Of a stretch of DNA of 64,000 bases, positions 16,152 to 37,849 are shown in pieces. The notes beneath the pieces are model-generated. The model saw only the letters and a program-made list of their open reading frames with translations. It ran no database searches and had not been told where the DNA came from. Each line of letters begins with the position of its first letter. Position 1 is the first letter of the stretch. Made by a program: the position numbers and the translations under genes. The stretch lies in the sequence record MT679221.1; one strand, written 5' to 3'.

Positions 16152-18005
16152 ATGGTAAAAATCGTTGACTCTAACAACAACGCTCAGCAGAACAACACTC
16201 AGACTCAAGACACCGCACCACTGGGCGGTCTGGGCAACGAGACTGTAAAAGTGCAAACTGCTGTGCCGGGTACTTCTACTGTCAGCCAATTCGATAACGC
16301 ATTTGGCATCCGCAACATCAGCACCTATGCAATGCACTTCGTCAACCTCCTGGACGAGCTGAAGAAAAGCAACGAATACCTCAACGCTTTCCGCTGGGGC
16401 ACCATCGCCGGCGTGGGTAACGAAATGGGTTCCGCGGCGTATGTCGCAGGCCAATGGCAGGGCCACTGGCTGTATGGTATCATCTTCTTTGAACGCGGTC
16501 AGTCTCTGCGTCTGAAAGAAACTACCAACAACGGCCAGGAAGACTACTACACCATCACTGAACTGTTCAACAAAGACGTGCTGGCAGTAGTACAGAAAAA
16601 CATCATGGAAGCGCATGGTCTGACCAATGCGAACTTCATGATCATCAACTCCGTACCAGACCTGGGTAAAGTTCTGGATGCTGAGTGGGCACGTACTCTG
16701 ATGGGTCAGATGATGATGGGCATCTTCGGTCGTATCGCAGGCTACCTGGGTACGCTGAACCTGCGTAAGCATGACCGTTATCAGGCTGCAGTAATGCCGC
16801 TGGAAGATGGTGCGGTTGTGGATGCTAATGGCCACGCACAACGTGCTGATTTCGCAATCACCGTTGAGCACAGCCCAAGCAACGTATCCGACGCCACACC
16901 GACTCTGCTGGACACCAATCAGGTACAGGTGTATCCGCGTGTATCCGGTACTGGTTTCGTCAATATGCGTTTCACCGGTCAGAAGCCTGTCGTTAACGGC
17001 GTCTACGACCTGAAACAGCTGCAGGCTGAAATCGTAGTAAGTCTGGTCGATTCTCAAACTGAAGGTGCAATGGCACCGTATGAACGTCAACTGCTGCTGC
17101 TGGCTGCATTTGCAGAAATCGCGGCAATCGGTGGCTGGCGTGACCTGTTTGTGAAACGTCTGAACAAACAAGATCGCAAGTTCTCCCGTGTGGCAGAATA
17201 CCTGTCCTGGGGTGCTGACGCTCGTCCTGATGTATCCAAAATCGACGGTAGCCGTGAAGCTATCGAAGGTTGCCTGGATATGTTCGCACCGCGTGAAGCA
17301 GCACTGGTAGTTAGCCATCGTGCCGGTAACGGTCTGGGTGGTCTGTCTACTATGCTGTCTGAAATTGCGGTCGGTTACGACAACTCTCTGAAACAGCTGC
17401 TCGCTATTCTGAATTCCATGTCCCCGCGTGATCAGAACGGCGAAGTTGTTGCAGCGACCAGCTTCACTGCAGTATTTGCTTCTGCACTGAAAGCACAGCT
17501 GGGCGATGCCTTCAATGGTACCATCCATTGCAGCCACATCGTGAAAGCAGCCGTACCGACTGTTTCCGGTGTTTACACCGGCACTGCACAGAAACGTAGC
17601 TTCCAGGATATGGACCTGATTTCCGTTGTTACCAAACTGGGTGATAACGCGAACGACGTCTATAGCTACCTGAACGCACAGTCCTACAGCCACCGTGAAC
17701 TGAACGAGCGTCAACAGCGTATCTACATGCTGAAACTGGCCGCTTCTCTGTTCGCATCCAAAGCACCGCAAGCTACCGGTGAATCTCTGGATATGGCTAT
17801 CAACCCGATCTTCGGTAAATGCCTGCTGGACTTCGTCCGTAACAACTGCACCTGGTCTATGACTGGTGTAAATGCCTACAACACGATGGCGACCTCTCTG
17901 TTCTTCAACAACGGTGGGGAAGACTTCACGCTGTCTGGCAACGGCCTGTCTGCAAGCGGTTCCGATTTCGGTCTGGGCGTGTCTCTGAGCAACTTCAAAC
18001 TGTAA
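16152..18005 (+). CDS. chmA: Chimallin, major phage nucleus shell protein (phiKZ gp54-like)
   Basis: 617 aa, strongly biased high-expression codons, low-complexity termini, double early promoter. Occupies the conserved position immediately upstream of nvRNAP beta'. Assignment rests on synteny and size, not on an alignment. Confidence 0.75.
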   Translation: MVKIVDSNNNAQQNNTQTQDTAPLGGLGNETVKVQTAVPGTSTVSQFDNAFGIRNISTYAMHFVNLLDELKKSNEYLNAFRWGTIAGVGNEMGSAAYVAGQWQGHWLYGIIFFERGQSLRLKETTNNGQEDYYTITELFNKDVLAVVQKNIMEAHGLTNANFMIINSVPDLGKVLDAEWARTLMGQMMMGIFGRIAGYLGTLNLRKHDRYQAAVMPLEDGAVVDANGHAQRADFAITVEHSPSNVSDATPTLLDTNQVQVYPRVSGTGFVNMRFTGQKPVVNGVYDLKQLQAEIVVSLVDSQTEGAMAPYERQLLLLAAFAEIAAIGGWRDLFVKRLNKQDRKFSRVAEYLSWGADARPDVSKIDGSREAIEGCLDMFAPREAALVVSHRAGNGLGGLSTMLSEIAVGYDNSLKQLLAILNSMSPRDQNGEVVAATSFTAVFASALKAQLGDAFNGTIHCSHIVKAAVPTVSGVYTGTAQKRSFQDMDLISVVTKLGDNANDVYSYLNAQSYSHRELNERQQRIYMLKLAASLFASKAPQATGESLDMAINPIFGKCLLDFVRNNCTWSMTGVNAYNTMATSLFFNNGGEDFTLSGNGLSASGSDFGLGVSLSNFKL

Positions 18006-18087: not shown

Positions 18088-19455
18088 GTGAGAAAGGTAC
18101 CAAAATTCTACGGAATATCCGGCCGGTTGGTTAGTCAGGATAACTATTTGTCCGATTTGCAAATAGAAGCTGCTGCCAAAGGTATTAAACCGCCCACTAT
18201 TATTAACGATGTCGCTGTTAACGGGGATGCGATCGAGGTTGCTGAACTTATCGATCGCATGGTACAGAACAGAATCGTTGACGAAGAACTGAACTCTGCA
18301 CCGATTTGTAGTTTGGATTGTCCGGCACCGATCGCGCATCGTTACAATCTTGGTTGTAAGTGTCCGACGTGTGGTTATGTTGTAACTGAACATCGAATTG
18401 AATCCGATGTCTGGTTACGTGCGCCTGATGAAATGGGTAACTTCGTCAACCCACGATTCTGGGCAATGTTCAATGCTTTCTTTAATAGCAAGTTGAAGAA
18501 GTTTGAACGTAACAAGGTCACTATCGAACGCGGTAATGACTTGATGATGTGGATGATTGACCCGTATTACCGTATAGAAGAACCAGACGGTAAACGCGCA
18601 CATGCTGTGAAACGTGTATTGGAAGAACATGGTTTCGTTCGTGGCTTGCGCAATCTGGTTGATAACCACGTTAGTATCTTTAACATCCTTACCACGCCAG
18701 AAGCCTGGAAGGAAATCTTCGCACCCAATCGGCATAACGCCGCTGAAGGTGAACGCTTACGTTTACAATGGAAGGAGCTATTCGAAACGCAACGCCATGC
18801 ATTCTTCCCAAGACACTTACCGCTAATCTCCTCTAAACTTATCGTTACTGAGGAAGGTCGTCGTGGTGTCATGGTAGACCCAGTGTTCACGGGTGCTATT
18901 GATGCGGTGAAAAATATCGCGTTGCTTTATACGCGACGTAAAGCGATCGAACCACGTTTTCTGATTAGTCGTGCTTTGAAAGCGAACCGTCAGTTAACGT
19001 ACTTCCACATGGACTTCCGTCGTGAGTCTATGGAAGGTAAACCGGGTGACTATCGTGCGAAATTGGGTTCCACCCATATTCCGTTCGGTGGCCGTGCAAC
19101 CATCTCACCTATCTCAGAACCACACGATGCCTGGAAGTTAAAAGCACCATGGCGTTGGATGGTTGGGTTGATGTCGACCCACATCGAGAACAAACTGCTA
19201 CGCCGGGGTTATTCGTCACGGCAGTGTGAGCGTATCGTCGCAAAAGCGGCAATGCAGTATGACCCGCTTGTAGACGAAATCTTTAAAGAACTGATTCGTG
19301 AATCCCCAGGCGGTCTTGGGATCATGGTCATACCGCTGCGTAACCCGACGCTGGTACAGTTGTCTATTCAGACGCTGTTCATCGACGAAGTTGTTACCGA
19401 TGTTAACCAGTGTTCGCTGCGTATCTCCGACCGTGTGATAAAGATGGCTAACGGT
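18088..19455 (+). CDS. rpoC: nvRNAP beta' N-terminal subunit (phiKZ gp55-like), exon 1
   Basis: Zn-site CSLDC..CKCPTC; GGRATISP; PLRNPTL (cf. LNRQPTL); ends ..KMANG at the predicted 5' splice site. Confidence 0.88.
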
Positions 19456-20859
19456 AAAAGTGTTATTCTGCTATTCCTTATTCTTAGTCGGTGACTGGTA
19501 ATAGGGAATAAATTGTGATTATTGAAAAGTTGAGTAGGAAACTACGCGATGATTTAGAGCCCTCGTATGTTTTTAAGGGGTATTACAGACACCCAGTCTA
19601 TCGTGATCTCTTTGTTGATGCATTGGGTGACTGTAAAGTAAAAGGTATGGTCATGCCGCTACCGGTCTTCATTCTCAAAAGTGGATACCTGGGAGTGCGC
19701 GGTTGTAAAGGCGAAACCCATTTACATCGAATTGTTGCGACTGTGTTCCTGGATAAATGTGGTGACGAGGTTAACCATCGTGATGGTGTTAAGAGTAATC
19801 CATCTGTGGTAAACCTTGAGTGGTGTTATCGAAAGGAAAATGTTAATCATGCTTTCGATACTGGTCTAAGAACTGACAACATTATTGTCGATGTCAGAAA
19901 TCTCGAGACCGGCGATATAGTTCAGTTCCGTAGCATGACTAAGGCGGCTGAGTATATCGGCGTTAATCGGCACTTGGTTTCAAGCTCGATCGCGCGTGGG
20001 CTTAATCGTCAATACACGCTAAATGATGTGTTTGAAGTCAAGGTACCGGAAGACGACTGGATTCTCACCAAGAATTCTATTGGTAAGAACTCAGGACCAG
20101 GTAATAAAGGACTGGTCATCAGAAAAGTTGGTAAGGAACCATATTTCCTGTTCTCGTCTGTACCGGCAGCAGCCGAATACGTGGGTATAAAACCACACCT
20201 CATCTATTCCCATCTCAACGGCGGTTCCGTCGATTTGACTAAGTTTGGATATGAGGCGTGGTACATGGTGGATATCGATGTTGCCATAACTGACATGATC
20301 GATCTCCGCAAACCCAGACCACAATCACAAATGCCAAAACGTGTACCGTCGATGGTGCGTGTGACTGATACGACCACTAACATCAAAACCATTTGGAATT
20401 CTTTACAAGAGTTTTCAAACGCGATTGGTGTGAAAAGAAACACTGTGGCCAAAGCAGTCTCACAAACCGGAAAGTACAAACAATTTGAAGTTCAATATTT
20501 AACAGCAGAATAGCCTTGCCCCATCAGACGGGAAACCTCTGATGTGTATCTCCCTGAATTGCTGGGAACCCCTAAAGCTCATTTGCCCATGTGGAGACGA
20601 AAGTCGGAAACAAGTAATGAGATGACCTATGCTAAACAATACTGCTAAGGGTTTTAACAATGGGTAATCAGCAGCGAAGCCTCGTAAGAGGAACGTTCAA
20701 CGACCGGAGCTGAAATGCTCGTAGGTGCTTAGAATAGCACCGAAGTGGGGAGGAGCCTAAAAGCGAAAGCTCATGGCTAAGGTATGGTCTGTGCCCTAAT
20801 GAAAGTTAGGGAGGGTGTTACTACACACCTGCTCCAAAAGGATTGGAGTGGACAAACAG
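19456..20859 (+). mobile_element. Group I self-splicing intron (1404 nt) with HNH homing endonuclease
   Basis: P AATTGCTGGGAA 20557-68, Q AATCAGCAGC 20666-75, R GTTCAACGACCGGA 20695-708, S AAGGTATGGTCT 20779-90. P2 20522-44; P9 20794-811. 5' exon ends in U and intron ends in G. Splicing restores NGDFDGD in frame. Confidence 0.92.
19515..20513 (+). CDS. Intron-encoded HNH homing endonuclease with three NUMOD1-like DNA-binding repeats
   Basis: HRIVATVF..VNHRDGVKSNPSVVNLEWCYRKEN HNH motif. Repeats FRSMTKAAEYIGV, FSSVPAAAEYVGI and WNSLQEFSNAIGV. GTG start. Confidence 0.9.
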   Translation: MIIEKLSRKLRDDLEPSYVFKGYYRHPVYRDLFVDALGDCKVKGMVMPLPVFILKSGYLGVRGCKGETHLHRIVATVFLDKCGDEVNHRDGVKSNPSVVNLEWCYRKENVNHAFDTGLRTDNIIVDVRNLETGDIVQFRSMTKAAEYIGVNRHLVSSSIARGLNRQYTLNDVFEVKVPEDDWILTKNSIGKNSGPGNKGLVIRKVGKEPYFLFSSVPAAAEYVGIKPHLIYSHLNGGSVDLTKFGYEAWYMVDIDVAITDMIDLRKPRPQSQMPKRVPSMVRVTDTTTNIKTIWNSLQEFSNAIGVKRNTVAKAVSQTGKYKQFEVQYLTAE

Positions 20860-24793: not shown

Positions 24794-24821
24794 AAAATTT
24801 ACGTTAGTGGGACATCATGTG
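24794..24821 (+). promoter_or_regulatory. Putative nvRNAP middle promoter AAAATTTAC-N15-TGTG
   Basis: Recurrent motif; TAC 24800-02, TGTG 24818-21. Confidence 0.65.
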
Positions 24822-24855
24822 TGAACCACTAGACTGCTTTTCCGAAAAGGATGAA

Positions 24856-25512
24856 ATGATGATTAACCAAGAAATTTTCAAAGACAAATGGCTTTACCCG
24901 CAGACCGAACCGGATCAGCAAAACCGTACGCGTAAACTCAACATTGAACCGAATGATTTCAACGGTGATGTTGAAACTATGAAGTTTAGCTACTCTTTTG
25001 GTAAGGGCGAAGGTCTCTATTTCTCTGCACCGATTACGGTTTGCCGTACCATTATCGAAGCTCTGCAGGATTGTCTGCGTAAGAGCGAAAAGAGTATGCT
25101 GAAGTTTACTAACGAAAACGGCAACAAACCGCCCGTTAGTCTGATTGTTGGCCGTGAAGACAACCTGGTACCGTTCATCGCTATTGCCGGTGAAATCCAG
25201 GGCGTTGGTGCCCGCCAGAAGAAGTTCTACTTCTCCTACCCGAAAGGTTTCCGTATTTTCCGCGACGGCCAGCAGGTTTCTGATTTAGAACTTGCTGAGC
25301 GCTGTGCACGTGCGTTTATCACTAACTTCGAGAAGTTCTTACAGAACCTGGAAGAGAAATATAAGCCGCGTGAATTCCAGCAAGGTGGTGGTAGCTTCGG
25401 TCGCGGTGGATACGGCGGTGGCCAGGGTGGTGGTCAGCGTAGCGGCGGCGGTTATCAACAGCAACAATCTGCACCTCCAGCAACCACTGATTCTTACGAC
25501 GAATTCCTCTAA
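24856..25512 (+). CDS. Probable ChmC nucleus-associated RNA-binding protein (phiKZ gp67-like)
   Basis: Start reassigned to MMINQE (AAGGA RBS); C-terminal G/Q/R-rich disordered tail; synteny directly upstream of the gp68- and gp69-like genes. Confidence 0.6.
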   Translation: MMINQEIFKDKWLYPQTEPDQQNRTRKLNIEPNDFNGDVETMKFSYSFGKGEGLYFSAPITVCRTIIEALQDCLRKSEKSMLKFTNENGNKPPVSLIVGREDNLVPFIAIAGEIQGVGARQKKFYFSYPKGFRIFRDGQQVSDLELAERCARAFITNFEKFLQNLEEKYKPREFQQGGGSFGRGGYGGGQGGGQRSGGGYQQQQSAPPATTDSYDEFL

Positions 25513-25647: not shown

Positions 25648-27282
25648 ATGAAAATTACGAAGATTAAAGACCGGATGACAATCGAGCATCATGGTCAAGA
25701 GGTCTCATTTATTGGCTTACGTTATCGGAAGGATAACAACGCACCCGACTACATCACTGTTAAAGGTAAACAGATTGCACGCGACAACATTCTCTTCATG
25801 GAATTACAACGCGTGTGGGATTATTTAACGCCAGACGAACAAGATGAACTGTTCATGGCGTATCTGATGCTGGACGAGCTGGCAAACGAATCGACGGAAA
25901 CGCAGCGTAAGCACATGCCGAAGATTGTGCAGACGATTGCGAAGTTCCACAAGGCCGAAGTGTATCGTAAGCTGTATCCCATCGATAAGCTGTGGATTCC
26001 GCAGAACATGGAAGATACGCACGATGAAATGAACAGTAATTATCCGGAAGCGATGACGTACATTCGTCCGGACTATTACGAGTTGTTGATACTGGTCCTG
26101 ATGATTAAACCGTATATTCCGGTGTTCCTCACCATGGGGACGTTCCCGATAGGTAAGAACTTGCCAATCGAAACACATCGGAAAATGGTGTACAATCTGA
26201 CATACTGTCTGGAGATGCTTCAAGACACAGAAGTCATGTCTTTACCTGCTATTCCGAAACTGCGTGGGTTCCTACAGACAGTGATGGAAAAGGTAGAAAA
26301 AGAACTGGCAAACAAAGGTACGAACAGCACCAGTTTGTCGGTACTGGCTACGGTGCGGGGCTATGGCACGGATATGATGGAAGATTATATCCTGGCGTAT
26401 GCTATTATTAAATTGTTGGCTGTCCGTGAAGTCGGTGGTGAATTACCGGTTGAAATCATGGTTAACAACAACATCGTCACCGGCATGTATTTCCTGGTTA
26501 AACAAGAGATTGAAACAGGTTTTGCAAACAAAATCTCTAACCAGCCGGTGCTGTTAAAAGCGCATCCGGAAAGTGTGGTATTCAATGGCGAAAAGGGTAA
26601 GATAAACGCCATGGATTTGGTGCAGGCACGTTCTCCTGCCCAGATGAAAGAATACGTCCGTACCGAGTACGTATTTAAAGAATACCGCTCTTTCTTGAAA
26701 ACAATGCGTCTGGATAATGCCGCTCCAGCAGATGTTAAGTTATTGATTGATTCGCAACTGGCAACACACGACGGTCCTGTCTATACGCTGCACGAATGGT
26801 TAGTCGCGTTAGCACTTCATCGTAGCGTGCATTATAAGACGTATACCGAATGTGGACCAGAAGCGTTTCGCTACGGTATGGCATTGGCACAGGCAACTTA
26901 TCTCAATTATGGAATGTATGACGTTGCGCAACTGTTAAGTTGCAATATGGTGCGTTCTGAGATGTCTGCCGGTTATGCAGCCGACCCAATTCGATCTGAA
27001 CTCAAAGCAGATTTAGATAGATATTATCTTCAGGAGTATCGCAACCCGCGTAATCTCGAACCGCAATCTACACCACGGGAATCACTGACCTTGTTACACA
27101 AGGATCACATCAACCCATATCTGTTCCATCTCAGGGCTACACCAGAAGCAGCTGCGCTGCTGAAGTGTGAGACGGATCAGCCAAACTATATACCTCACTT
27201 GTCACTGCACAATAGCCTGGCGGAGTTTATGGTGTTGAATGCACGTCGCAAGTTAGAAGAAGTTGAATGGTTTAATTCTTAA
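25648..27282 (+). CDS. nvRNAP promoter-specificity (sigma-like) subunit, phiKZ gp68-like
   Basis: 544 aa helical protein with an early promoter; synteny in the gp65-gp75 block. No alignment run. Confidence 0.65.
   Translation: MKITKIKDRMTIEHHGQEVSFIGLRYRKDNNAPDYITVKGKQIARDNILFMELQRVWDYLTPDEQDELFMAYLMLDELANESTETQRKHMPKIVQTIAKFHKAEVYRKLYPIDKLWIPQNMEDTHDEMNSNYPEAMTYIRPDYYELLILVLMIKPYIPVFLTMGTFPIGKNLPIETHRKMVYNLTYCLEMLQDTEVMSLPAIPKLRGFLQTVMEKVEKELANKGTNSTSLSVLATVRGYGTDMMEDYILAYAIIKLLAVREVGGELPVEIMVNNNIVTGMYFLVKQEIETGFANKISNQPVLLKAHPESVVFNGEKGKINAMDLVQARSPAQMKEYVRTEYVFKEYRSFLKTMRLDNAAPADVKLLIDSQLATHDGPVYTLHEWLVALALHRSVHYKTYTECGPEAFRYGMALAQATYLNYGMYDVAQLLSCNMVRSEMSAGYAADPIRSELKADLDRYYLQEYRNPRNLEPQSTPRESLTLLHKDHINPYLFHLRATPEAAALLKCETDQPNYIPHLSLHNSLAEFMVLNARRKLEEVEWFNS
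27015..27030 (+). promoter_or_regulatory. Early promoter motif embedded in coding sequence
   Basis: Exact AGATAGATATTATCT within the DLDRYYL codons, ~265 nt before the 27295 start. Confidence 0.5.
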
Positions 27283-27294
27283 GGAGTATTTAAA

Positions 27295-28995
27295 ATGCAG
27301 CTTGTAAATCTACTGATGTATCCGGTCTACGATGTTCCAGAGCAAGTTCGTCGCCGCATCGGCTTTAACGCATCGACGGGTGCACTGGATGACTTAGCAG
27401 CAGCGGTTGAACTGGGCGGGGAAAAAGCTGTGGGAACACAGCAGTATCAAGAAGCATTATCTGCCATCGTGGGCTTCGATGGCACCCAGAACGGTTTTGA
27501 GCGTCCATTCATCAACGTGTCCGATGATGACAATCGTCCTGTACAGTTCCAATGGGAATCACGTGATACCGGTATCTTTAACTTCGTGGCGGTGTTTATT
27601 GCTAAACCTCTGAATGCAACACGCACTCAGGAAACGCAATACATCGTCTCCGGTTATACCAGTCAGGCAGAAACCAGCCTGGGTAGCCTGTTGCCGGACG
27701 ATATGGTGTTGTACATTAACGACATCTACGGCTTACAGGCAACGTATACACACGATGCCCTGGGCGGCAAAACATTGAACCCAGACTCTTTCCGTCTACT
27801 GGATAACTACGTTTTATCGAAAGCGCTGTCTGTTGAAGGTCAAACAGAAAGTACGGTAGATATCATTTCGATCGCGAAAGCAGCGGATATGGTAAAACGT
27901 ATTGAAATGAATAGCGGTGAGAAGTTCGTTCCAACGAGCGACTCTGTGCTATCCGCAACCAGTAGCTCTGCACCACAGTTGATGGTATCCCAACTCCAGC
28001 GTCCAGAAAACTACGTATCTGCAATCAGTAATGCGTATCTGGCAAGCTCTGGGGTAGATACCGAACTCGGTAGCGTGGAAAGCTTCTTTGCAGGTAATAA
28101 CTCCATCGGCGTTGAATCTGAATTGAAGCAGCGTGGTGTTATCCGTAACTACAGCAACCACGAACTGATTGCTGCGATGCGTCAAGCACTCCAGAACGGG
28201 ATGTCTGATGTATCTGGCGGTTGGAAAGCAACCAGTAAGGCGACGTTCCGTTTGGCTGATTTGCGTAATGCGATTGTCAACCCAATGCGGTTGGATGAAT
28301 GTATCCGTGAATCGCTGGCGCTGGCAAGTCGCCGTGGGTTGGGTGCAGGGCTGGTTAACCAAACCGACCACTGGATTGGACGTAACGGCTTTTCTACTCA
28401 GGGTAGTCTAGTTGCGTATGATCTGGCTATGTCTATCGGGCCGATTATGTCACGTAACCTGATTGGTGAAGTGAGCTTTGTCTTTGATAACCGCAACACG
28501 GATATCATGATAGAGCCTACGCTGGAAGTTATTCCTAACTCAGTCAGCAGCATCACACACCATCAGTTACCTGCTGCATTAGGTCGTCGTTTCTTGCAGA
28601 ACATGAAAGAAGCGATGGTTCAGGTTACTAAACATAACCATATTCGCTGTCACATGCTGGTCACCGCATTGTTGGGGACCGTTACTCGTATTGAAATCCG
28701 TGTCGACGACGAACCGCTGGAATATTACACCTACGCGTCGTTTATGCAATTCCGTCTCCATACCGGCAACACCACCGATCTCAAATACGTTGGTGAGCTG
28801 GCACAGAACACCGCAACGCTGTTGAAAGCCGTGGAAGAAGGTTATACAGAATTCGAGAAAGGCCAAGGCCGGGGTCGAATGCTATCTAACATTCCAACTA
28901 ACACAGGTGGCTTAGATCCTCTTGGAGGTCTTGACCTGGGTGGTGGCTTAGGCGGTATAGGCGGAAACGGACTCGGCAACGGTCTCATTGATTAA
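27295..28995 (+). CDS. Probable PicA/Imp1 phage-nucleus protein import factor (phiKZ gp69-like)
   Basis: 566 aa; AAGGAG RBS; synteny immediately after the gp68-like gene; Gly/Leu-rich C-terminal tail. Confidence 0.6.
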   Translation: MQLVNLLMYPVYDVPEQVRRRIGFNASTGALDDLAAAVELGGEKAVGTQQYQEALSAIVGFDGTQNGFERPFINVSDDDNRPVQFQWESRDTGIFNFVAVFIAKPLNATRTQETQYIVSGYTSQAETSLGSLLPDDMVLYINDIYGLQATYTHDALGGKTLNPDSFRLLDNYVLSKALSVEGQTESTVDIISIAKAADMVKRIEMNSGEKFVPTSDSVLSATSSSAPQLMVSQLQRPENYVSAISNAYLASSGVDTELGSVESFFAGNNSIGVESELKQRGVIRNYSNHELIAAMRQALQNGMSDVSGGWKATSKATFRLADLRNAIVNPMRLDECIRESLALASRRGLGAGLVNQTDHWIGRNGFSTQGSLVAYDLAMSIGPIMSRNLIGEVSFVFDNRNTDIMIEPTLEVIPNSVSSITHHQLPAALGRRFLQNMKEAMVQVTKHNHIRCHMLVTALLGTVTRIEIRVDDEPLEYYTYASFMQFRLHTGNTTDLKYVGELAQNTATLLKAVEEGYTEFEKGQGRGRMLSNIPTNTGGLDPLGGLDLGGGLGGIGGNGLGNGLID

Positions 28996-29007
28996 GGATT
29001 ATTAACC

Positions 29008-30375
29008 ATGAAATTGATTGAATTCTACCGTTCGTTTCTGACCTCTCTCGGATACGGATTCGAAGGTGACATGTTGACTATCGATGATGGTCATCCGGCA
29101 ATGTTCACCTACAACAAAGTGAAGCGCCGCTTGGTGCTTCCAACTGCAGCGATGATTAAGCGTGGGTTGGAAGACGATGAAGGTAGTGAATGTCATGCGT
29201 TCCACCCACTGTGTGAATCGGTACTGGCTGGCGAATCTGGAACGATTCGCTTCCTGAAGAAAGCCATCAACGCGAACCTCTTCCTGAAAAGCTTCGAGCT
29301 AATCGATGCGATTTTGGAAACAGCAGCCGAAGGAAAGAATATCCGTCTGGCGGCGTACAAGAAGTTTTTAAGCGATGTGGTTTGTGCTGACCTGAAAGAT
29401 CCGACGATGGATAAGAAACTGGTTCAGAGCTGGCAAGCGGTGAAGAACTATGTTTACGGGTTGCTGGAAGAAGATAAAAAGACAAAGATCACCAGTATCT
29501 TCATCTCCAGCGATATGACCATTGAAGGTATCAAATATATCCGCGTGGCGAACTACAAACACATGTTTGAAGAAGAGTCACTGGATGGTACGGCAACATT
29601 CTTCGGTGCCAAGCTCCAGCGTAAGCAGGATAAGGTCATTATCTTTAACCTGCTAACTGCAGTGTTTGGTTGGTATCCTTCGGTTACGGGTTCTAACGAT
29701 CCGCGTCCGTACTTCGGTTCTTTGGCACGCGGTTGGGCACAATACGTGACCAACTACAATCAAGTGGTTCGAGGTCTGCGTGACCACACTCCACTGCGTC
29801 CGTTAGAAGAAGAATGGATTGGCCAACTGGATAACATGAGCGTTTATGATAACGTTATCCAAACTCTGCCGTATAATACCGGCCCACGTAACGATCAGGC
29901 AACAGACACCACCGCAACAGATTTCCGTATCGGGCGTACACCTGCCGGCACAAAGCCGGTCGTTGCTTTAGCTTCTCAACAAGCTCCGCAGGAAAATCTT
30001 GATCTCAACGATCCGGTAAACTATTTCCGTGCGAAGAAAGCGCAACAGGCGTCTTCGGCTAATAGCTTCAATGCGTTAGCACCGAAGATTCAGGAAGCGC
30101 TGCGTGAGAACAACGGCCATTTACCGAAAGGGACAATTAAAGAACTGTCTCTCGGTGAAGCGCTGCGTGGTAATGCGGTGACGAAAGAAAGTGGTCTGGG
30201 TTCTGGTTTGCTGGGAAGTAGTAACAATCTCTTGGGGGGTAGCACGCAGTTGGGCGGCGGTAGCACCAACCTCTTAGGAGGGAGCAGTGACGTGTTAGGT
30301 GGTCTGGGTGGTTTAGGTGGCGGAAGTAGCAGCAGTTTAGGCAACCTACCATTCTCATCAGCTAATTTACGTTAA
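29008..30375 (+). CDS. Conserved chimallivirus protein (phiKZ gp70-like)
   Basis: 455 aa; AAGGA RBS; long Gly/Ser/Leu tail. Confidence 0.7.
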   Translation: MKLIEFYRSFLTSLGYGFEGDMLTIDDGHPAMFTYNKVKRRLVLPTAAMIKRGLEDDEGSECHAFHPLCESVLAGESGTIRFLKKAINANLFLKSFELIDAILETAAEGKNIRLAAYKKFLSDVVCADLKDPTMDKKLVQSWQAVKNYVYGLLEEDKKTKITSIFISSDMTIEGIKYIRVANYKHMFEEESLDGTATFFGAKLQRKQDKVIIFNLLTAVFGWYPSVTGSNDPRPYFGSLARGWAQYVTNYNQVVRGLRDHTPLRPLEEEWIGQLDNMSVYDNVIQTLPYNTGPRNDQATDTTATDFRIGRTPAGTKPVVALASQQAPQENLDLNDPVNYFRAKKAQQASSANSFNALAPKIQEALRENNGHLPKGTIKELSLGEALRGNAVTKESGLGSGLLGSSNNLLGGSTQLGGGSTNLLGGSSDVLGGLGGLGGGSSSSLGNLPFSSANLR

Positions 30376-30383
30376 GCGTTAGA

Positions 30384-30412
30384 AGAAGGGACTGGGCGTC
30401 CCTTCTTTTTTT
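30384..30412. terminator. Bidirectional terminator
   Basis: AGAAGGGAC-TGGGC-GTCCCTTCT plus T tract, between convergent genes. Confidence 0.8.
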
Positions 30413-30735
30413 CAAGATTCTACGATAGTCGATAAGATGTTACTTACCACACCGACACTAGGAACCAATAAGGTTCTTATCTCTGGCGTGAAATCAAACG
30501 GAGTAGAAATTCCGTTCATTAACATCATCGGATAAATAATACTATTATCGTACTGTTTGAGACGACAGTACGCGTAGAAACTGTGTACCTCTGGGTAGGC
30601 ATATTTTGGGTCAACAACTTCTTCTGTAGTATCTGGGTGTTTGCGAAGGAAGTCTGTATAGTCATGCAACACCTTATACTTGGTCGAATCAGGCGAAGGT
30701 ATTATTTCGGATAAGGTAGCAAATTTATCTAGCAT
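30412..30735 (-). CDS. Small protein, possible LysM/gpX/T4 gp53-like baseplate component
   Basis: 107 aa; AAGGAG RBS; C-terminal IIYPMMLMNGISTPFDF..LLVP resembles the W-x-I-x-x-x-N-x-I..L-x-IP signature. Confidence 0.55.
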   Translation of the reverse strand: MLDKFATLSEIIPSPDSTKYKVLHDYTDFLRKHPDTTEEVVDPKYAYPEVHSFYAYCRLKQYDNSIIYPMMLMNGISTPFDFTPEIRTLLVPSVGVVSNILSTIVES

Positions 30736-30801: not shown

Positions 30802-33039
30802 ATGAAAACACCAGTCGAACTCATGTCAAGCGTTGCTGACCGTGAGGTGAATATCACTGGCGTATCTGGGGCACGTGCCTCAATGGTGGGTGGACATATG
30901 AAGTCGGCGGTACCACTGGACAATCCAGACCCGACTATCCATTTTACCGGCGCTGATGTGAACTACCACGATTATTGTTTTAACGATATCGTGGAAGATA
31001 GTGGTACTGTGTGCAGTTACACAACCAAAGAAGGTGTTACTCGTGCAGCTGTTTTTGCACGCTATGGTCGTGAAGGGGATCACGATCCTCTCCAGCACGT
31101 TATCTTCTTCACGCGCGCAGATTTAACCAACCAGCGCAAAGTGATGATTGATGTAATCGATATTAAGTATTACACCAACCACGATAACATTTTCTCGTCT
31201 AAGAAAGAGGCTACTGGGAAACTTCAGGCGTTGCTGCGCGGACAGACGCAGCACCTGGAAAAAGATGAAATGCTTACCGTACTGCCGGCACAGAAAGACG
31301 GTGAGTTTGTCGATGGGGTCAACCTGCACACTGTGACAATGTCGCACCCGGACATTATCGAGGACTCGTACACCATCTCCGAAACTGCAGCGAAGGCGAT
31401 GCACGCTTATGGTTTGCGTGCAATCGACTTTACCTTGCGCGACGACGAGTACCTGCTTGATACGTATGGGACAACGGGTATTGATGGCGTTCGTCGTCCA
31501 CAGTACCTGCCCAATAAAGGACAGGCAATTCGCGATGATGGGTTGGTTATAGCCGCGCGTCGTTTCGATAAGCTGTGGGCGGCTATTGACTCACACGTGG
31601 GCGAAACACAACATATCTCTCCGCACTTCGACCGTTGTGAGTATGTTGACGCTGACCCTGAGCATTACAAAGCGCGTCAGGCCGGCGACTTTGAAAAGAT
31701 GGAACGTACCGGTTCTCGTGTCGTTGATATTCAGGTATGGCGGGACGAAACCAAATGCGATCGTGGTGTTAACAATATCGCATGTACCGAAGAGAACAAA
31801 CGCGAGTTAGATCACTACGCGAACGCTTTGAAACGTTTTTACAATGATATCGTGCGGTTCTATTTTGCGATGTCCAAAGACAAGAACATTGTCTGGTCAC
31901 CGAAAGCGTTTGAGATTCTTGACAAGGCGTTCTGTTCTGAGACGTATGAAGTCTATAACGACTTCCGTGAAGAGATTGGTCGTGAATACGATGAAGCCAT
32001 GCGCAAAGGCGAGTATAACCGTTCTGCTGATAAGAACGTGTTAAACAAACTGGCGCAGCCGGTTCAGCGTGGTCTCTGGGACCCAATTGGTAGTTACACG
32101 ATACGCATCGTGGTACGTTATCCAATCCCAGTTACCGTCTCATCGAAAATCACCGACCGTTCAGGTACAAAAGGTATCGTGGGCGCAGTGCGGCCTGATG
32201 AAGAAATGCCGATTAACGAGTTCGGAGAACGTGTGCATGTCATTCGTTCCATGAACGCCGTAATTCGTCGTTCGACTTATGCTGCGCTGTTCCACATGTA
32301 TTGGTCTGCTGCATCCGAGCAGTTGAAGATGCGGTTGAAACCATTACTTGCCGCCAACCAGGTTGACGAAGCCTGGGAAATCCTGATGGACTATATCGAT
32401 CGCTATAACCCACGCTGGACATTCTATCTCAATGCCAGTCACCCGGATACTGGGTCACGTCTGGAACTCTTTAAAGAGATTTACGACTTCACGATTCGTA
32501 TCTGGCTTCCCCACGAATTGAATGCTACCCAGGTAGAAATCTGCCGTGCTCTAGGCGAGTATGCACCACGCAAGTCTAAGCTACTGATTACTAACTATCA
32601 GGGTGAGAAAGAGTGGACGAAGAACCAGTTCTACGTCGGCATGGTAGAGACTCTGCGCCTGGATAAAACCGGTCGTGAGTTCTCCAGTATCTCGTCGATG
32701 TACACGAACTATTTGGGTTGTATTGATGCATCCAACCAAGGACGTGGTTCATATCCGATTAACCTGAAAGGGTTGAAGTGGGGTGGTCCTTCCGAGCAGC
32801 GTCTTACCGACGGCTTTGGTCCGGGCAACTTCCCCGAAACTCATGACCGCGCTAATAACCCTGCGGTACACCGTGCGATCGTAACGGGGCTGTATAACTC
32901 GCCAACACCAACCAATCCAGGGGTGCTGGTCGATCGTAAGAAACTGCCAATGGGAGATTCGCAGATTGACAGGATGATACGTAACATCCATCGCTGTGAA
33001 GGTTTTGAATTAGTGCGTCCAATTCGGGAGGATAAATAA
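30802..33039 (+). CDS. rpoB: nvRNAP beta subunit, C-terminal part (phiKZ gp71-73-like), intron-free
   Basis: RASMVGGHMKSAVPL (cf. RALMGSNMQRQAVPL); SKITDRSGTKGIV (cf. GDKxxGRHGNKG); 745 aa continuous. Confidence 0.88.
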   Translation: MKTPVELMSSVADREVNITGVSGARASMVGGHMKSAVPLDNPDPTIHFTGADVNYHDYCFNDIVEDSGTVCSYTTKEGVTRAAVFARYGREGDHDPLQHVIFFTRADLTNQRKVMIDVIDIKYYTNHDNIFSSKKEATGKLQALLRGQTQHLEKDEMLTVLPAQKDGEFVDGVNLHTVTMSHPDIIEDSYTISETAAKAMHAYGLRAIDFTLRDDEYLLDTYGTTGIDGVRRPQYLPNKGQAIRDDGLVIAARRFDKLWAAIDSHVGETQHISPHFDRCEYVDADPEHYKARQAGDFEKMERTGSRVVDIQVWRDETKCDRGVNNIACTEENKRELDHYANALKRFYNDIVRFYFAMSKDKNIVWSPKAFEILDKAFCSETYEVYNDFREEIGREYDEAMRKGEYNRSADKNVLNKLAQPVQRGLWDPIGSYTIRIVVRYPIPVTVSSKITDRSGTKGIVGAVRPDEEMPINEFGERVHVIRSMNAVIRRSTYAALFHMYWSAASEQLKMRLKPLLAANQVDEAWEILMDYIDRYNPRWTFYLNASHPDTGSRLELFKEIYDFTIRIWLPHELNATQVEICRALGEYAPRKSKLLITNYQGEKEWTKNQFYVGMVETLRLDKTGREFSSISSMYTNYLGCIDASNQGRGSYPINLKGLKWGGPSEQRLTDGFGPGNFPETHDRANNPAVHRAIVTGLYNSPTPTNPGVLVDRKKLPMGDSQIDRMIRNIHRCEGFELVRPIREDK

Positions 33040-35144
33040 TGGCGGGTCGTTCTGTACACGTACGTGATTTGCGTATGCTTAACTCTGATCAGGTGTGGAA
33101 ACTACGCGGGCGTTATTACGTGACTTTCGACGATGGTAAGTCGTTGGAAATGTCTAGTCGCCACATCAAACTCAGCTGGCCGTATTGGGGTGTGTCGCGT
33201 CTGTATCCGCAGGTGCCCACTCCATCGACCATGGCGTATCGTCCAGGTCAGGTAGCAACAGATGACCTGCATCTGGACTTTATGTCGGAAGCAGCGGTAC
33301 TGGCCCGTAAAGCAGGTGTCGACCTTGCTGAAACGCGTTATATCCTGAGTCAACATGTCTACGCCGATGCGTTCAACATGACAGTGAAGAACTTGCTGTC
33401 CTATTGTACGACAATCGACTTTGATACGATGATGGAGATCTACGACCATCCGAACTTCGAACTCATCCGTCAGTGGGAAGTGCAATATCCTACTGGCTAC
33501 GATGAAGATGGTCGGGATATGGTTGAAGAAGCGTACAAGCTTATCGAGAAAATCTTCAAAGACCCTGCGCTACGGTATAACCCGGTCGTGATGTCGGTAC
33601 TGGACGGTACTGTGAAGATGAACCAGGTACTGCAAGCCTTCGTGCGTGGTAAAACGTCAGAAATTGACTCACGTGTATACACCAATCAGGTGTGGGAAGG
33701 CTTCTTTACCGGAATGCATTCGGTTATTTCGCGTTTGAAAGAATCCGGTGCAACTTCACGTTCCCACCTGTACAACACTGACAAGATTGCCGAAGCAGAA
33801 TACGCCTCACGTAAACTGCAGCTGGCAGCAAACGTACTGATGTATTTCACGTACGACGACTGCGGTACAACTCACGCACACCGCTACACGTTTAAGGATA
33901 CGCAGCTGGATGAGCGTGCCTATAAAGCGATGGTGGGGATGCGTTATCGTTTAGAAGGCGATAATGGTCCGTGGTTGAGATTTGAGAAAGGCGGATACGC
34001 AGACCTGGTTGGCAAACCGCTGGTCTTCCGTAGTGCCATGACCTGTAAAGAGATGGCGAATCAGTCCATCTGTGCGACCTGTATGGGGGATTTGATTTAT
34101 AACCTCTCTGAAGGTACGTCACCGGGTCACCTGGCATCCACGTCCATCTCGGAAAAGGGTACACAGGGAATTCTCTCCACCAAGCACCTTGACTTCTTGC
34201 GTTATCTGCTCAACCTGGTACTTACCCCACGTATGCGTGAGTATATGACCGAATACAAACATAACTCTCTGAAAGGGTTGTGCTTGCTGCCAAAACCACA
34301 GCGTGGGAATTGGTCAGAATACGAGTTGGTTGTTACCGACAAAGTTTATTCGGAGCTGAGCCAGATTGCGTATCATGAAGATCTCGATGCGATTGATGAA
34401 ACGGCATTACCAGAAATCACCGACTTAACTTTCCAACGTCGTTTAGAAGATGGGCAGATAATCGCTGCGGATTCTATCGATGTGCGAATGGGTGTTTGTG
34501 GGAACTTCTCTAAACCGTTCCTGCACTACTTCTTGAAACAACGAGCGAACATTCGTATCGAGAAGAAGACGGTAGAAATCCCCTTAAAAGGATGGAACCC
34601 GAAACACCCGGTCCTGGTCTACACCAACCGTTCTGAATCGATGGCAGAGTTCGTAGCCGGCTTAGAAACCAAGCTCCGTTCGATTGCTGCCGATAAGAAC
34701 GAAGACATTGTGGAAATCATCAACACAGCATCGACTGTGAAGTTGAACAAGAAACAAGGTCGTGTGAAACCGGTGACGTTGGTTGAAATGGGTGGTGCTA
34801 CAGAGAAACAGTGTACTTATGCGTTGATGGACACGTTTAAGTATATCCAGCGTAAGCTGAGTGGTATACCGATGACGCACATTGCGATTATGTTGGCGAT
34901 ATCTCGTGTAGAGTCGCCAACCAATCCGTTCCCGGCGGTAGGATTTGACAGTGAGGATTCTACTAATGCCACCGGGAAACGGTTTGTCGATCACAACACG
35001 CTCATTAGTTTGCGCTCGGCAATTCCGATGTTGTTGTTTGAAGGACAGCAGGGGAATATCGATCGCGTTGGTTTTTATACCGAGTACAAAATCCCGGCAT
35101 CGTTGTACGATGACCTAGGAGCCGCTGTGGTAATTGAGTTGTAA
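33039..35144 (+). CDS. rpoC: nvRNAP beta' C-terminal subunit (phiKZ gp74-like)
   Basis: DDCGT; RSAMTC..ICATCMG Zn site; SISEKGTQGILSTKH (cf. SIGEPGTQLTMRTFH trigger loop). Confidence 0.88.
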   Translation: MAGRSVHVRDLRMLNSDQVWKLRGRYYVTFDDGKSLEMSSRHIKLSWPYWGVSRLYPQVPTPSTMAYRPGQVATDDLHLDFMSEAAVLARKAGVDLAETRYILSQHVYADAFNMTVKNLLSYCTTIDFDTMMEIYDHPNFELIRQWEVQYPTGYDEDGRDMVEEAYKLIEKIFKDPALRYNPVVMSVLDGTVKMNQVLQAFVRGKTSEIDSRVYTNQVWEGFFTGMHSVISRLKESGATSRSHLYNTDKIAEAEYASRKLQLAANVLMYFTYDDCGTTHAHRYTFKDTQLDERAYKAMVGMRYRLEGDNGPWLRFEKGGYADLVGKPLVFRSAMTCKEMANQSICATCMGDLIYNLSEGTSPGHLASTSISEKGTQGILSTKHLDFLRYLLNLVLTPRMREYMTEYKHNSLKGLCLLPKPQRGNWSEYELVVTDKVYSELSQIAYHEDLDAIDETALPEITDLTFQRRLEDGQIIAADSIDVRMGVCGNFSKPFLHYFLKQRANIRIEKKTVEIPLKGWNPKHPVLVYTNRSESMAEFVAGLETKLRSIAADKNEDIVEIINTASTVKLNKKQGRVKPVTLVEMGGATEKQCTYALMDTFKYIQRKLSGIPMTHIAIMLAISRVESPTNPFPAVGFDSEDSTNATGKRFVDHNTLISLRSAIPMLLFEGQQGNIDRVGFYTEYKIPASLYDDLGAAVVIEL

Positions 35145-37228: not shown

Positions 37229-37849
37229 ATGAGTCGTCGCAAAAAGAAACCCGCTTATAACCCACGTAAAGACGCACGCGATTTCGTCAAGGCGATGATG
37301 CAGTCTGTGTTGAAAAAACAAGCTGTGTTTATCGAAAGTACCGAATTCCTGTCAGGCAAAATTGATCGGGAGCGTGAAGTAACTGAAGCCATTGCGCACG
37401 AAGAGCTGAAAGCTTTCACGTTGAAAGCGCTGGATGAAGCACAAGCGGCATTCCTCGGCATGTGCCAACAAGGCAAAGAGCTGTTCGGTAAACTGATTGT
37501 TGAGGCGGATGCTAAGGCTGTGCCGGTGTTTGACATGCTGAACGATAACAGCAAAACGTGGAAAGAAATCAAAGACCAGTTCCACGTCGACCACACCGAA
37601 CTGTCCCTGATTGACCAGCGGGCGAATATGCTCGCGATGGATATCCAGGGCACCAGTATCGAAATCTTCTCCACGTATAACGCGAAAGTGAAGTTCGTGA
37701 AGCAGGCGCTGAATAACGGTCATACCGTGGAACAAGCCGAAGTTCTGTTGGCCGAAGCTTTGGCTAATAATTCGAAAGAACTCCCTAAAAACGCCATCGT
37801 CGATCACAACGACGTTGTAGTAGAAACCGAGGAAGCGGCTAATGTCTGA
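37229..37849 (+). CDS. Hypothetical coiled-coil-like protein
   Basis: Start reassigned to MSRRKKK (AAAGGA RBS); 206 aa. Confidence 0.8.
   Translation: MSRRKKKPAYNPRKDARDFVKAMMQSVLKKQAVFIESTEFLSGKIDREREVTEAIAHEELKAFTLKALDEAQAAFLGMCQQGKELFGKLIVEADAKAVPVFDMLNDNSKTWKEIKDQFHVDHTELSLIDQRANMLAMDIQGTSIEIFSTYNAKVKFVKQALNNGHTVEQAEVLLAEALANNSKELPKNAIVDHNDVVVETEEAANV

Follow-up and report, generated by a model that had tools for sequence, protein, structure and literature searches.

Low-complexity C-terminal tails on the PicA/Imp1 and gp70 orthologues of Proteus phage 7 as possible tethers at the phage nuclear shell

In Proteus phage 7, which is almost a twin of Salmonella phage SPN3US, the neighbouring orthologues of the import factor PicA/Imp1 (phiKZ gp69) and of phiKZ gp70 both end in low-complexity, Gly/Leu-rich tails. 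In our best and still tentative explanation, to which we give somewhat less than an even chance, these are disordered sticker-and-spacer tethers which would cluster PicA and gp70 at the nuclear shell, in an accessory role and not as a conserved selectivity filter. The basis of this reading is orthology, predicted disorder, composition, distribution over the family and the co-variation of the two tails. The window, i.e. the whole 64 kb stretch that was analysed (record MT679221.1), also encodes chimallin itself, with ChmA at 16152-18005. The features are collected in Table 1.

Table 1. Features of the window, with coordinates counted from its first nucleotide
Feature	Coordinates	Strand	Basis or remark
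Chimallin (ChmA) orthologue	16152..18005	+	C-terminal tail ~17913-18002, docking comparator
ChmC/Imp6 orthologue (phiKZ gp67, PhiPA3 gp61)	24817..25512	+	phrog_3284; tail ~25372-25509
gp68 orthologue (non-virion RNA polymerase subunit)	25648..27282	+	phrog_3209; position kept
PicA/Imp1 orthologue (phiKZ gp69, PhiPA3 gp63), 566 aa	27295..28995	+	phrog_3141, profiles, synteny
PicA/Imp1 Gly/Leu-rich C-terminal tail, residues 529-566	28879..28992	+	predicted disorder, composition
gp70 orthologue (PhiPA3 gp64 family), 455 aa	29008..30375	+	phrog_3520, phmmer, iterated profile
gp70 folded N-terminal domain, residues 1-292	29008..29883	+	pLDDT, family-wide alignments
gp70 variable low-complexity C-terminal region, residues 293-455	29884..30372	+	pLDDT, survey of representatives
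gp70 distal Gly/Ser/Leu repeat tail, residues 387-455	30166..30372	+	pLDDT <50
Small conserved gene between gp70 and nvRNAP beta gene	30412..30735	-	context only
Non-virion RNA polymerase (nvRNAP) beta and beta-prime genes, synteny anchor	30802..35144	+	phrog_3295, phrog_3015

ORF 27295 is the PicA/Imp1 orthologue. It matches phrog_3141 (E 6.6e-157), as do Phikzvirus gp69, PhiPA3 gp63, Goslar gp174 and RAY gp244; a profile built from 19 other gp69 proteins finds it with E 6.8e-18, and hhalign places it on the gp69 profile at 99% across residues 15-517. ORF 29008 is the orthologue of gp70 (PhiPA3 gp64). It matches phrog_3520 (E 3.7e-135), which is common to the Phikzvirus, PhiPA3 and Goslar proteins, and phmmer pairs it with PhiPA3 gp64 at 3.6e-17. 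An iterated gp70 profile gathers all 25 of the 25 positional orthologues and no other protein, and the 982 library matches to the gp70 query span residues 1 to ~300. For SPN3US, YP_009153325.1 and YP_009153326.1 are listed in PMC10643120 as the homologues of PicA and gp70, respectively. Together with strict synteny in more than 25 phages, the profile and the shared PHROGs bear out the gp69/gp70 assignment which the initial annotation had wished to see confirmed by HMM.

The order gp68, gp69, gp70, nvRNAP beta is identical in 25 phage loci and nine contigs, and the small opposite-strand gene has a counterpart at the same position in nearly all loci compared; with the polymerase genes as tblastn queries, 255 phage records were recovered. 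The gp68 orthologue, an nvRNAP subunit according to the literature (preprint 10.1101/2024.03.27.586873), carries no low-complexity tail. Upstream, phrog_3284 is common to ORF 24817 and the Phikzvirus protein at the gp67 position. The ChmA gene is followed by an nvRNAP gene as in phiKZ gp54/gp55, and its product is 42% identical (E 2e-143) to a Derbicus protein with the Pfam domain PF25677, Chimallin_Phikzvirus. The tail region itself is 98-100% identical across more than 25 phage records, hence the tails are not a sequencing artefact.

Comparison of the PicA model (AlphaFold2; pLDDT 76.7, pTM 0.74) with the PDB by Foldseek gave no match at E <=0.001, and a PicA fold without known structural relatives has also been reported in PMC11087766. 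The N-terminal domain of gp70 is modelled with pLDDT >90 throughout, and conservation in family-wide alignments is confined to it. It has no structural or sequence relative in the PDB or Pfam; Foldseek returned no meaningful PDB match for the gp70 model, and the gp70 profile matched none of the PDB sequences, as was also the case for ChmA. When the six operon and shell proteins were compared with Pfam, nucleoporin families included, nothing matched at E <=0.01. A search of BFVD with the structure models led only to uncharacterised jumbo-phage orthologues. With the gp69 protein, tblastn found nothing beyond the SPN3US/Erwinia supergroup, and a protein search started from the gp69 alignment of 25 phages led back to this clade and added nothing.

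Both tails are predicted to be intrinsically disordered. In the PicA model the last helix covers residues 496-531, and the tail, which extends past the end of the family profile, has pLDDT <50. In gp70, residues 300-386 show mixed pLDDT with short helices, followed by the distal tail with values below 50. The PicA tail contains 14 Gly and 8 Leu in 38 residues, no aromatic residue and thus no Phe; the 69 residues of the distal gp70 tail include 20 Gly, 14 Ser, 14 Leu and a single Phe. Neither of them contains an FG motif. The C-termini quoted in the initial annotation for both ORFs are present in the sequence, as is its chimallin tail, which forms the last 30 residues of ChmA; its string for ORF 29008 is correct, but the ORF runs six residues further, to a stop codon at 30373-30375. 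Its description of the repeats as uncharged does not strictly hold for the PicA tail (3 Asp in 38, net -3); the gp70 tail has 5 charged residues in 69, net +1. The feature of charge-depleted polar spacers is found in the latter and only partly in the former.

Across the six frames, 96 ORFs reach 100 aa or more. Within these, the three 30-residue stretches of lowest entropy lie in the tails of ORFs 24817, 29008 and 27295, the ChmC/Imp6 tail (ORF 24817) being lowest in the whole window. The PicA and gp70 tails supply the two stretches highest in Gly+Leu (values of 0.70 and 0.67), compared with a maximum of 0.40 in the ChmA tail. This ranking places the tail composition far from chance. All three lowest-complexity tails, those of ChmC, PicA and gp70, lie within one operon. 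Recent DNA slippage or tandem duplication was considered as their source and rejected: the tails contain a single weak 9-nt array with 2.8 copies, and no DNA repeats were found from tail to tail within the window.

The two tails are distributed very differently over the family. For PicA, only 0-12 residues are present in 14 out of 25 phages, among them Goslar, RAY, PCH45 and an EL-like phage, which makes its tail clade-restricted and indicates that PicA works without one. The gp70 extension, surveyed among representatives with a complete N-terminal domain, is present in 173 out of 173, with 78-338 residues (median 161). The absence of tails from most orthologues, named in the initial annotation as an argument against its own proposal, is thus found for PicA and not for gp70. 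Tail composition, the conservation of which it had proposed to check, varies: Gly/Leu chemistry is limited to part of one supergroup, and 42 of 172 gp70 tails (24%) are Arg/Asp-rich and strongly charged. In the others, uncharged spacers surround a dominant sticker which is Tyr in 41, Met in 37, Phe in 28, Leu in 18 and Trp in 6 tails. Sequence identity of the tails is low even among close relatives. What recurs in gp70 is a biased tip: a hydrophobic or aromatic residue closes 63% of 172 tails, against a tail-wide share of 21%, the last three residues include a hydrophobic one in 90% (51% expected), and the last four a Lys or Arg in 62% versus 36%.

Literal FG-type repeats (FG, SLFG/GLFG, NPF) occur among the relatives, in some of them on both proteins of one genome. 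Where the folded parts are 55-65% identical to those of the window, both proteins encoded on one contig have Phe in place of Leu, as in L033/L034 with FG repeats on gp69 and gp70. In the Derbicus/Phobos/CR5 lineage the switch likewise affects both proteins, gp69 having FSFG and gp70 having NPF repeats. Further relatives carry 10 FG (P0005), 6 FG (P0007), 5 FG including GLFG and SLFGs (P0078) or 10 NPF (P0083), and xMFG repeats are likewise present. In Xoo-sp14 the PicA and gp70 tails are both Arg/Asp-rich, and in L032 an NSLL-type motif stands internally, in two copies per tail.

In several comparisons the tail motifs change together in PicA and gp70, the sticker type being specific for a lineage and matched between the two proteins. 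Tails of gp69 and gp70 from the same genome have 60 4-mers in common versus 30.1±6.2 after permutation (1 of 20000), where 7 of the 21 gp69/gp70 pairs were joined only through the equal length of their longest contigs; with one genome per lineage, there are 29 shared motifs versus 12.8±3.8 (3 of 50000 permutations), in a test which corrects only partly for relatedness. Exact sharing inside genomes exceeds permutation for 4-mers and 5-mers. The ratio F/(F+L) ranges from 0 to 0.91 in the tails and correlates weakly between gp69 and gp70, phylogeny being ignored (Spearman rho 0.44, p 0.046); in L037 and L031 the ratios of the two tails disagree. A GC or mutational bias behind the Leu/Phe switch was rejected, since the folded domains keep to an F/(F+L) of 0.24-0.41 and the switch does not follow GC content. 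Gene conversion between the tails was also rejected as a general cause; Caitlin alone has a 23-nt stretch with 87% identity.

These results bear on the view that the tails have no specific function at all, being tolerated low-complexity drift or an extension which merely serves solubility, turnover or spacing, with their resemblance due to genomic or host constraints. The hugely variable chemistry, the low identity between close relatives and the many phages with functional but tail-less PicA would fit such a view. Nevertheless, we think it improbable, as the gp70 extension with its biased tip is kept without exception, the F/L switch is tail-specific and explained neither by GC nor by the folded domains, and the sharing of exact words inside genomes is higher than in permutations.

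Bacterial SSB consists of a folded domain, a low-complexity linker and a short C-terminal tip. The three-part layout of gp70 is alike, and the tip of gp67 is acidic-aromatic like that of SSB; the gp70 fold is different, however, with no OB domain, and its tip is basic/hydrophobic instead of acidic. By this analogy the tail could be a flexible, drifting spacer of which only the last residues matter, docking into a groove on some partner common to both proteins, for instance ChmA, ChmB or nvRNAP. We regard this as a minor but appreciable possibility. A wide linker chemistry agrees with weak constraint on a spacer and the tip bias with docking, and the ends of gp69 and gp70 are often alike within one phage (LGLL/LGLL in PhiPA3, LGLL/LGLI in Phabio, TFNY/SFNY in L031, SFNF/GFSF in L030). 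Chimallin provides a precedent, as its flexible C-terminal extension (CTS1/CTS2) places its last residues on another protomer, the extreme C-terminus CTS2 being the published docking segment, and the ChmA and gp69 ends are similar in L030 and L037. No such similarity is seen in the window, in Caitlin or in phiKZ-like phages: the window proteins end differently, in LID (gp69), NLR (gp70) and FKL (ChmA), phiKZ-like ChmA ends in SFY versus GLL or GLI in gp69 and gp70, and the chimallin tail is also less repetitive. Moreover, the shared motifs are internal and repeated as well, and sticker type co-varies over the whole tail, which is more than a pure spacer would need.

The initial annotation had suggested that the repeats could form a cohesive, GLFG-like selectivity mesh or dock on chimallin, and that the gp70-like protein may contribute to the pore as well. 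As such an FG-nucleoporin-like mesh, the tails would themselves be the selective permeability barrier for import. Like Nup98-type GLFG domains, the tails combine predicted disorder, charge-poor Gly/Ser/Asn/Gln spacers and spaced hydrophobic residues beside Gly, and like nucleoporins their proteins are attached to the boundary of a compartment with selective protein import. The literal FG, SLFG/GLFG, xMFG and NPF repeats of the relatives speak for a mesh, too, as does the fact that no channel through the shell has been seen so far. A Leu-only repeat, GLLG//L, forms a cohesive, selective FG-like phase; repeats of plain GLLG showed no phase separation in vitro (PMC9918544). Against cohesion, the window tails are short, with 38 and 69 residues and 8 and 14 Leu. 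This is far from the high valency of tens of motifs in hundreds of residues; the Nup98 FG domain, with several hundred residues and tens of motifs, is longer by an order of magnitude. There is also no homology to nucleoporins and no known analogue of a transport receptor for the phage tails. Any likeness would be compositional and convergent.

Published data on gp70 come from two systems. PhiPA3 gp61, gp63 and gp64 are all found at the nuclear shell, a location in agreement with the proposal, and ChmB is recovered together with gp63 and gp64 (PMC10643120). phiKZ gp70 is counted among the nuclear proteins and did not co-purify with Imp1 on co-expression in E. coli (preprint 10.1101/2024.03.27.586873). 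We found no statement on essentiality of gp70 in the transposon or antisense papers. That PicA forms a punctum on the nuclear shell and is needed for selective import has been published solely for the proteins of phiKZ, PhiPA3 and Goslar. Published mutations which affect import selectivity map to its folded surfaces, and recognition of cargo goes through surface patches (PMC11087766). Given the clade-limited PicA tail, the Arg/Asp-rich gp70 tails and selectivity on folded surfaces, a mesh is not the conserved mechanism, and as a universal filter the proposal falls, although it may still apply in the clade of the window. As an account of these tails we consider it quite unlikely.

Under the preferred reading, hydrophobic Leu stickers in Gly/Ser/Asn spacers, with a short terminal tip, would be presented on two shell-placed proteins and provide weak, multivalent adhesion of like with like, within gp70, within PicA/Imp1 and between both. 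By this adhesion both proteins would stay together and be anchored where import takes place on the chimallin shell; cohesion, clustering and partner are what we infer here. The conserved selectivity filter lies elsewhere, namely in PicA's folded part. Possibly the tail of ChmC/Imp6, which forms condensates, joins in. ChmC/Imp6 is encoded two genes upstream in the same operon, is associated with the shell and also has a low-complexity, predicted disordered C-terminus; the ChmC tail is disordered and required for condensates (PMC11077065), and Imp6 binds Imp1 (preprint 10.1101/2024.03.27.586873). It differs in being Asn/Gly-rich (Gly/Gln/Tyr/Arg-rich with an acidic-aromatic end in the window) with an acidic end cluster, and in acting together with RNA on an RNA-binding protein of the Whirly fold, whereas the gp69 and gp70 tails consist of Gly, Leu and Ser, are nearly free of aromatic and charged residues, and give no indication of nucleic-acid binding. 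A stronger version, in which the PicA, gp70 and ChmC tails with co-evolving stickers (Leu, Phe and others) build a miniature cohesive phase at the import site in part of the Chimalliviridae and help to decide what reaches the translocation step, appears rather unlikely to us; it would amount to a phage-sized, convergent analogue of the nuclear-pore FG barrier.

In the literature searched we found no mention of low-complexity tails that match between the essential import factor and the shell-associated protein encoded next to it, of literal FG-type repeats in these tails in several lineages, or of the invariable gp70 layout of folded domain, low-complexity region and biased tip. The central question about the phage nucleus is how folded proteins get through its closed chimallin shell, and the known import factors are without recognisable folds. 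The tails offer a handle which can be read from the sequence: they point to residues, to natural variants with Leu, Phe, Arg/Asp or no tail, and to the proteins expected together. Should the cohesion be real, a bacterial virus would have converged strikingly on the nuclear pore of eukaryotes; should it not, the tails would still mark a tether-and-tip design throughout the family.

The region holding the genes gp69 (the import factor PicA/Imp1) and gp70 (27295–30375) has 100% identity to Proteus phage 7 (MT679221.1) at the same coordinates and 99.5% identity to the Salmonella phage SPN3US (genus Seoulvirus), and it is found at 98–100% identity in more than 25 phage records. Several records of the Salmonella phages SPFM (for instance, LR535903 and LR535911) matched it only as dozens of short pieces with odd protein entries; they look like error-rich assemblies and were excluded from every tail analysis. 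The gene order is the nuclease SbcD, gp66, gp67 (ChmC/Imp6), gp68 (a subunit of the non-virion RNA polymerase, nvRNAP), gp69, gp70, a small gene on the opposite strand, nvRNAP beta, beta-prime and a helicase. Annotated phages with this order number 25, spread over at least 15 genera, and nine metagenomic contigs have it too. Nearly every locus inspected has the small gene, with a range extending from phiKZ-like phages to those of Vibrio; a Pfam search for its family or function gave no result. For Asesino, a related phage, formation of a nucleus has been shown (PMC11724907). The nvRNAP subunit gene behind that of chimallin (ChmA) has a group I intron and an endonuclease ORF at its end; its SPN3US counterpart is an uninterrupted gene of 531 aa. 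This insertion, missing from the SPN3US gene, accounts for the offset of about 1.4 kb between the coordinates of the window and SPN3US.

Table. Coordinates of genes, tails and other features in the window
Feature	Coordinates	Strand	Remarks
Chimallin orthologue	16152–18005		42% identity, E 2e-143, to a Derbicus protein with Pfam Chimallin_Phikzvirus
nvRNAP subunit gene	18088–19494		
Intron plus endonuclease ORF	19515–20811		
ORF ahead of intron	19515–20513		HNH and NUMOD1 homing-endonuclease domains
Group I intron	20483–20811		Rfam RF00028, 51.9 bits, E 8.7e-12
gp67 (ChmC/Imp6)	24817–25512		
gp67 tail	25372–25509		
gp69 (PicA/Imp1)	27295–28995		
gp69 tail	28879–28992		residues 529–566
gp70	29008–30375		
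gp70 distal tail	30166–30372		residues 387–455
gp70 end	30355–30372		
Small gene between gp70 and nvRNAP beta	30412–30735	minus	about 107 aa
ORF with low-complexity stretch	37842–39812		Ala/Pro/Glu/Val-rich, near residue 111
ORF with low-complexity stretch	56748–58007		strongly acidic, near residue 71

The assignment of ORFs 27295 and 29008 to gp69 and gp70, made in the initial annotation, holds by several approaches. ORF 27295 matches phrog_3141 (6.6e-157), which is common to a Phikzvirus gp69, PhiPA3 gp63, Goslar gp174 and RAY gp244. A profile built from 19 gp69 proteins, none of them of the SPN3US supergroup, found it at E 6.8e-18 and picked up no gp67, gp68 or gp70; hhalign of a gp69 profile against this ORF gave 99% across residues 15–517. 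ORF 29008 matches phrog_3520 as well as PhiPA3 gp64 (phmmer, 3.6e-17), and an iterated gp70 profile gathers exactly the 25 positional orthologues. Synteny agrees with these matches, and so does the list of Enustun et al., where SPN3US YP_009153325.1 and YP_009153326.1 are given as homologues of PhiPA3 gp63 and gp64 (PMC10643120). Both accessions belong to the proteins annotated for the SPN3US gene pair that matches the window.

Both C-termini quoted earlier are present in the sequence, but ORF 29008 runs six residues further to its stop, and the gp69 tail, with three Asp, is not strictly uncharged as had been proposed. The entropy of 30-residue stretches, compared over all ORFs of 100 aa or longer in the six frames (96 in total), is lowest in three tails, those of ORFs 24817, 29008 and 27295, and the two stretches richest in Gly+Leu (0.70 and 0.67) are the gp69 and gp70 tails. 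The low complexity of both tails is a property of the protein, since the coding DNA has almost no tandem repetition and no repeat is common to the two tail-coding regions of the window. In the AlphaFold2 model of gp69 (29 sequences, mean pLDDT 76.7, pTM 0.74) the last helix spans residues 496–531, and residues 529–566 fall below a pLDDT of 50. In that of gp70 (140 sequences) the pLDDT exceeds 90 from residue 1 to about 295, is mixed, with short helices, over 300–386 and drops below 50 over 387–455. Family-wide alignments of gp70 confine conservation to the first 292 residues (29008–29883), and its library matches mostly cover only positions 1 to about 300. The PDB holds no structural relative of either fold, as already published for PicA (PMC11087766). 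Within gp70 residues 59–84, Pro67 and Glu70 are the sole invariant columns among 140 relatives and His66 is nearly invariant; in the SPN3US supergroup His63, His66 and Cys69 are conserved, too. These columns could mark a metal or active site.

The two families differ in how widely the tail is distributed. A gp70 profile search over 1.84 billion representatives gave 982 matches; the best 150 of these plus the phage set included 173 proteins with a complete N-terminal domain. All 173 bear a C-terminal extension (78–338 residues, median 161). Their composition varies widely: out of 172 distinct tails, 42 belong to an Arg/Asp(Glu)-rich type. The others are charge-poor to moderately charged (less than 35% Asp/Glu/Lys/Arg; at most 12% in 71 of 173), and their dominant sticker, the hydrophobic or aromatic residue between spacers, is Tyr in 41, Met in 37, Phe in 28, Leu in 18 and Trp in 6. 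For gp69, tail length was taken as the residues past the end of the family profile in 25 phages. Tails of 28–58 residues occur in three groups only: the SPN3US supergroup; phiKZ, PhiPA3, 201phi2-1 and Phabio (Gln/Asn/Pro-rich, the last two or three residues aliphatic); and Xoo-sp14 (Arg/Asp-rich). The extension is just 0–12 residues in 14 of the 25, including Goslar, RAY, PCH45, an EL-like phage, RisingSun and Vibrio phages. Among 29 distinct proteins of the supergroup, the Gly/Leu type is confined to the SPN3US and Asesino/phiEaH2 branches, the other branches having Ser/Asn/Leu, Phe-containing or mixed tails. A tail conserved across gp69 orthologues is therefore contradicted.

Relatives with 55–65% identity to the window proteins have Phe at Leu positions. 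FG dipeptides number ten, six and five in the relatives P0005, P0007 and P0078, the five of P0078 including a single GLFG and several SLFG; MFG is repeated in P0081 and P0082, and NPF occurs ten times in P0083. On contigs L033 and L034 the gp69 beside an FG-type gp70 likewise ends in FG repeats, and in the Derbicus/Phobos/CR5 branch a gp69 tail with FSFG accompanies NPF repeats in gp70. The window tails lack two defining features of nucleoporin FG domains, FG motifs and valency, although natural relatives have the FG motifs; the likeness of the window tails is compositional and convergent. In synthetic Nup98-like repeats, phase separation was lost on changing GLFG to GLLG; an extra Leu restored a phase which kept out mCherry; an engineered carrier could enter it, native importins could not (PMC9918544). 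A true FG-like permeability barrier, quite improbable as a reading, could at most hold for this clade and cannot be the conserved mechanism: the tail is missing from most PicA orthologues, one gp70 tail in four is Arg/Asp-rich, and those of the window are short and virtually Phe-free. Our literature search did not find "FG repeat" together with "phage nucleus".

Tails of the same genome resemble each other. In 21 genomes, seven of whose gp69/gp70 pairs were matched by equally long source contigs, 60 distinct 4-mers were in common versus 30.1±6.2 with permuted partners (1/20000), and 36 5-mers versus 13.1±4.9 (0/20000). With one genome per lineage (nine), 29 4-mers were in common versus 12.8±3.8 (3/50000). 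In both comparisons, permuting removes relatedness only in part. The F/L ratio of the two tails is mismatched in the L037 and L031 lineages. F/(F+L) is 0.24–0.41 in folded parts and 0 to 0.91 in tails; the Leu/Phe switch does not track the GC content of the locus, and a trace of tail-to-tail exchange in the DNA was seen only in Caitlin. Xoo-sp14 (L009, 5507–8393), outside the supergroup, is another case of matched chemistry, both tails being Arg/Asp-rich.

The gp70 end is biased as well: 63% of the tails close with a hydrophobic or aromatic residue (21% tail-wide), and Lys/Arg occurs among the last four in 62% (36% expected). This bias speaks for a tether with a tip, a reading which we consider unlikely, yet compatible with tethering through stickers. 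Functionless drift is disfavoured as improbable by the universal gp70 extension, its biased tip and the co-variation of both tails. With few exceptions among 26 phages, the gp67 tail closes with an acidic cluster and then an aromatic or aliphatic last residue, a layout which it shares with the C-terminal tip of bacterial SSB; an acidic subregion is described in the ChmC paper, which does not mention SSB (PMC11077065). The basic and hydrophobic gp70 end is opposite in charge to this tip, encoded in the same operon. The ends of gp69 and gp70 are often alike in one phage (for instance, PhiPA3, Phabio, L030 and L031). The ChmA end resembles that of gp69 in L030 and L037, but not in Caitlin, phiKZ-like phages or the window (gp69 LID, gp70 NLR, ChmA FKL). 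Published work describes CTS2, at the extreme C-terminus of ChmA, as a docking segment on which lattice assembly depends, so it is a reasonable idea that the tails might mimic it.

PicA, a core gene product, is seen as a punctum on the shell, and its folded surfaces select the cargo (PMC11087766). Imp1 binds Imp6; co-purification of gp70 with Imp1 was not observed, and gp70 was counted among nuclear proteins (preprint 10.1101/2024.03.27.586873). In PhiPA3, gp61, gp63 and gp64 are all at the shell, and ChmB pull-downs contain both gp63 and gp64 (PMC10643120). ChmC needs its disordered tail to form condensates with RNA (PMC11077065); the PicA/Imp1 publications examined, these two sources among them (PMC11087766 and preprint 10.1101/2024.03.27.586873), do not mention a disordered tail. 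New here are the family-wide design of gp70, consisting of domain, low-complexity region and tip, and a sticker chemistry that depends on the lineage, extends to literal FG repeats and is matched between PicA and gp70. Tentatively, and with somewhat less than even confidence, we favour a role of the tails as disordered tethers made of stickers and spacers: weak adhesion of like with like would hold PicA/Imp1 and gp70, perhaps with ChmC/Imp6, clustered at the shell, and sticker chemistry would be kept matched between the partners.
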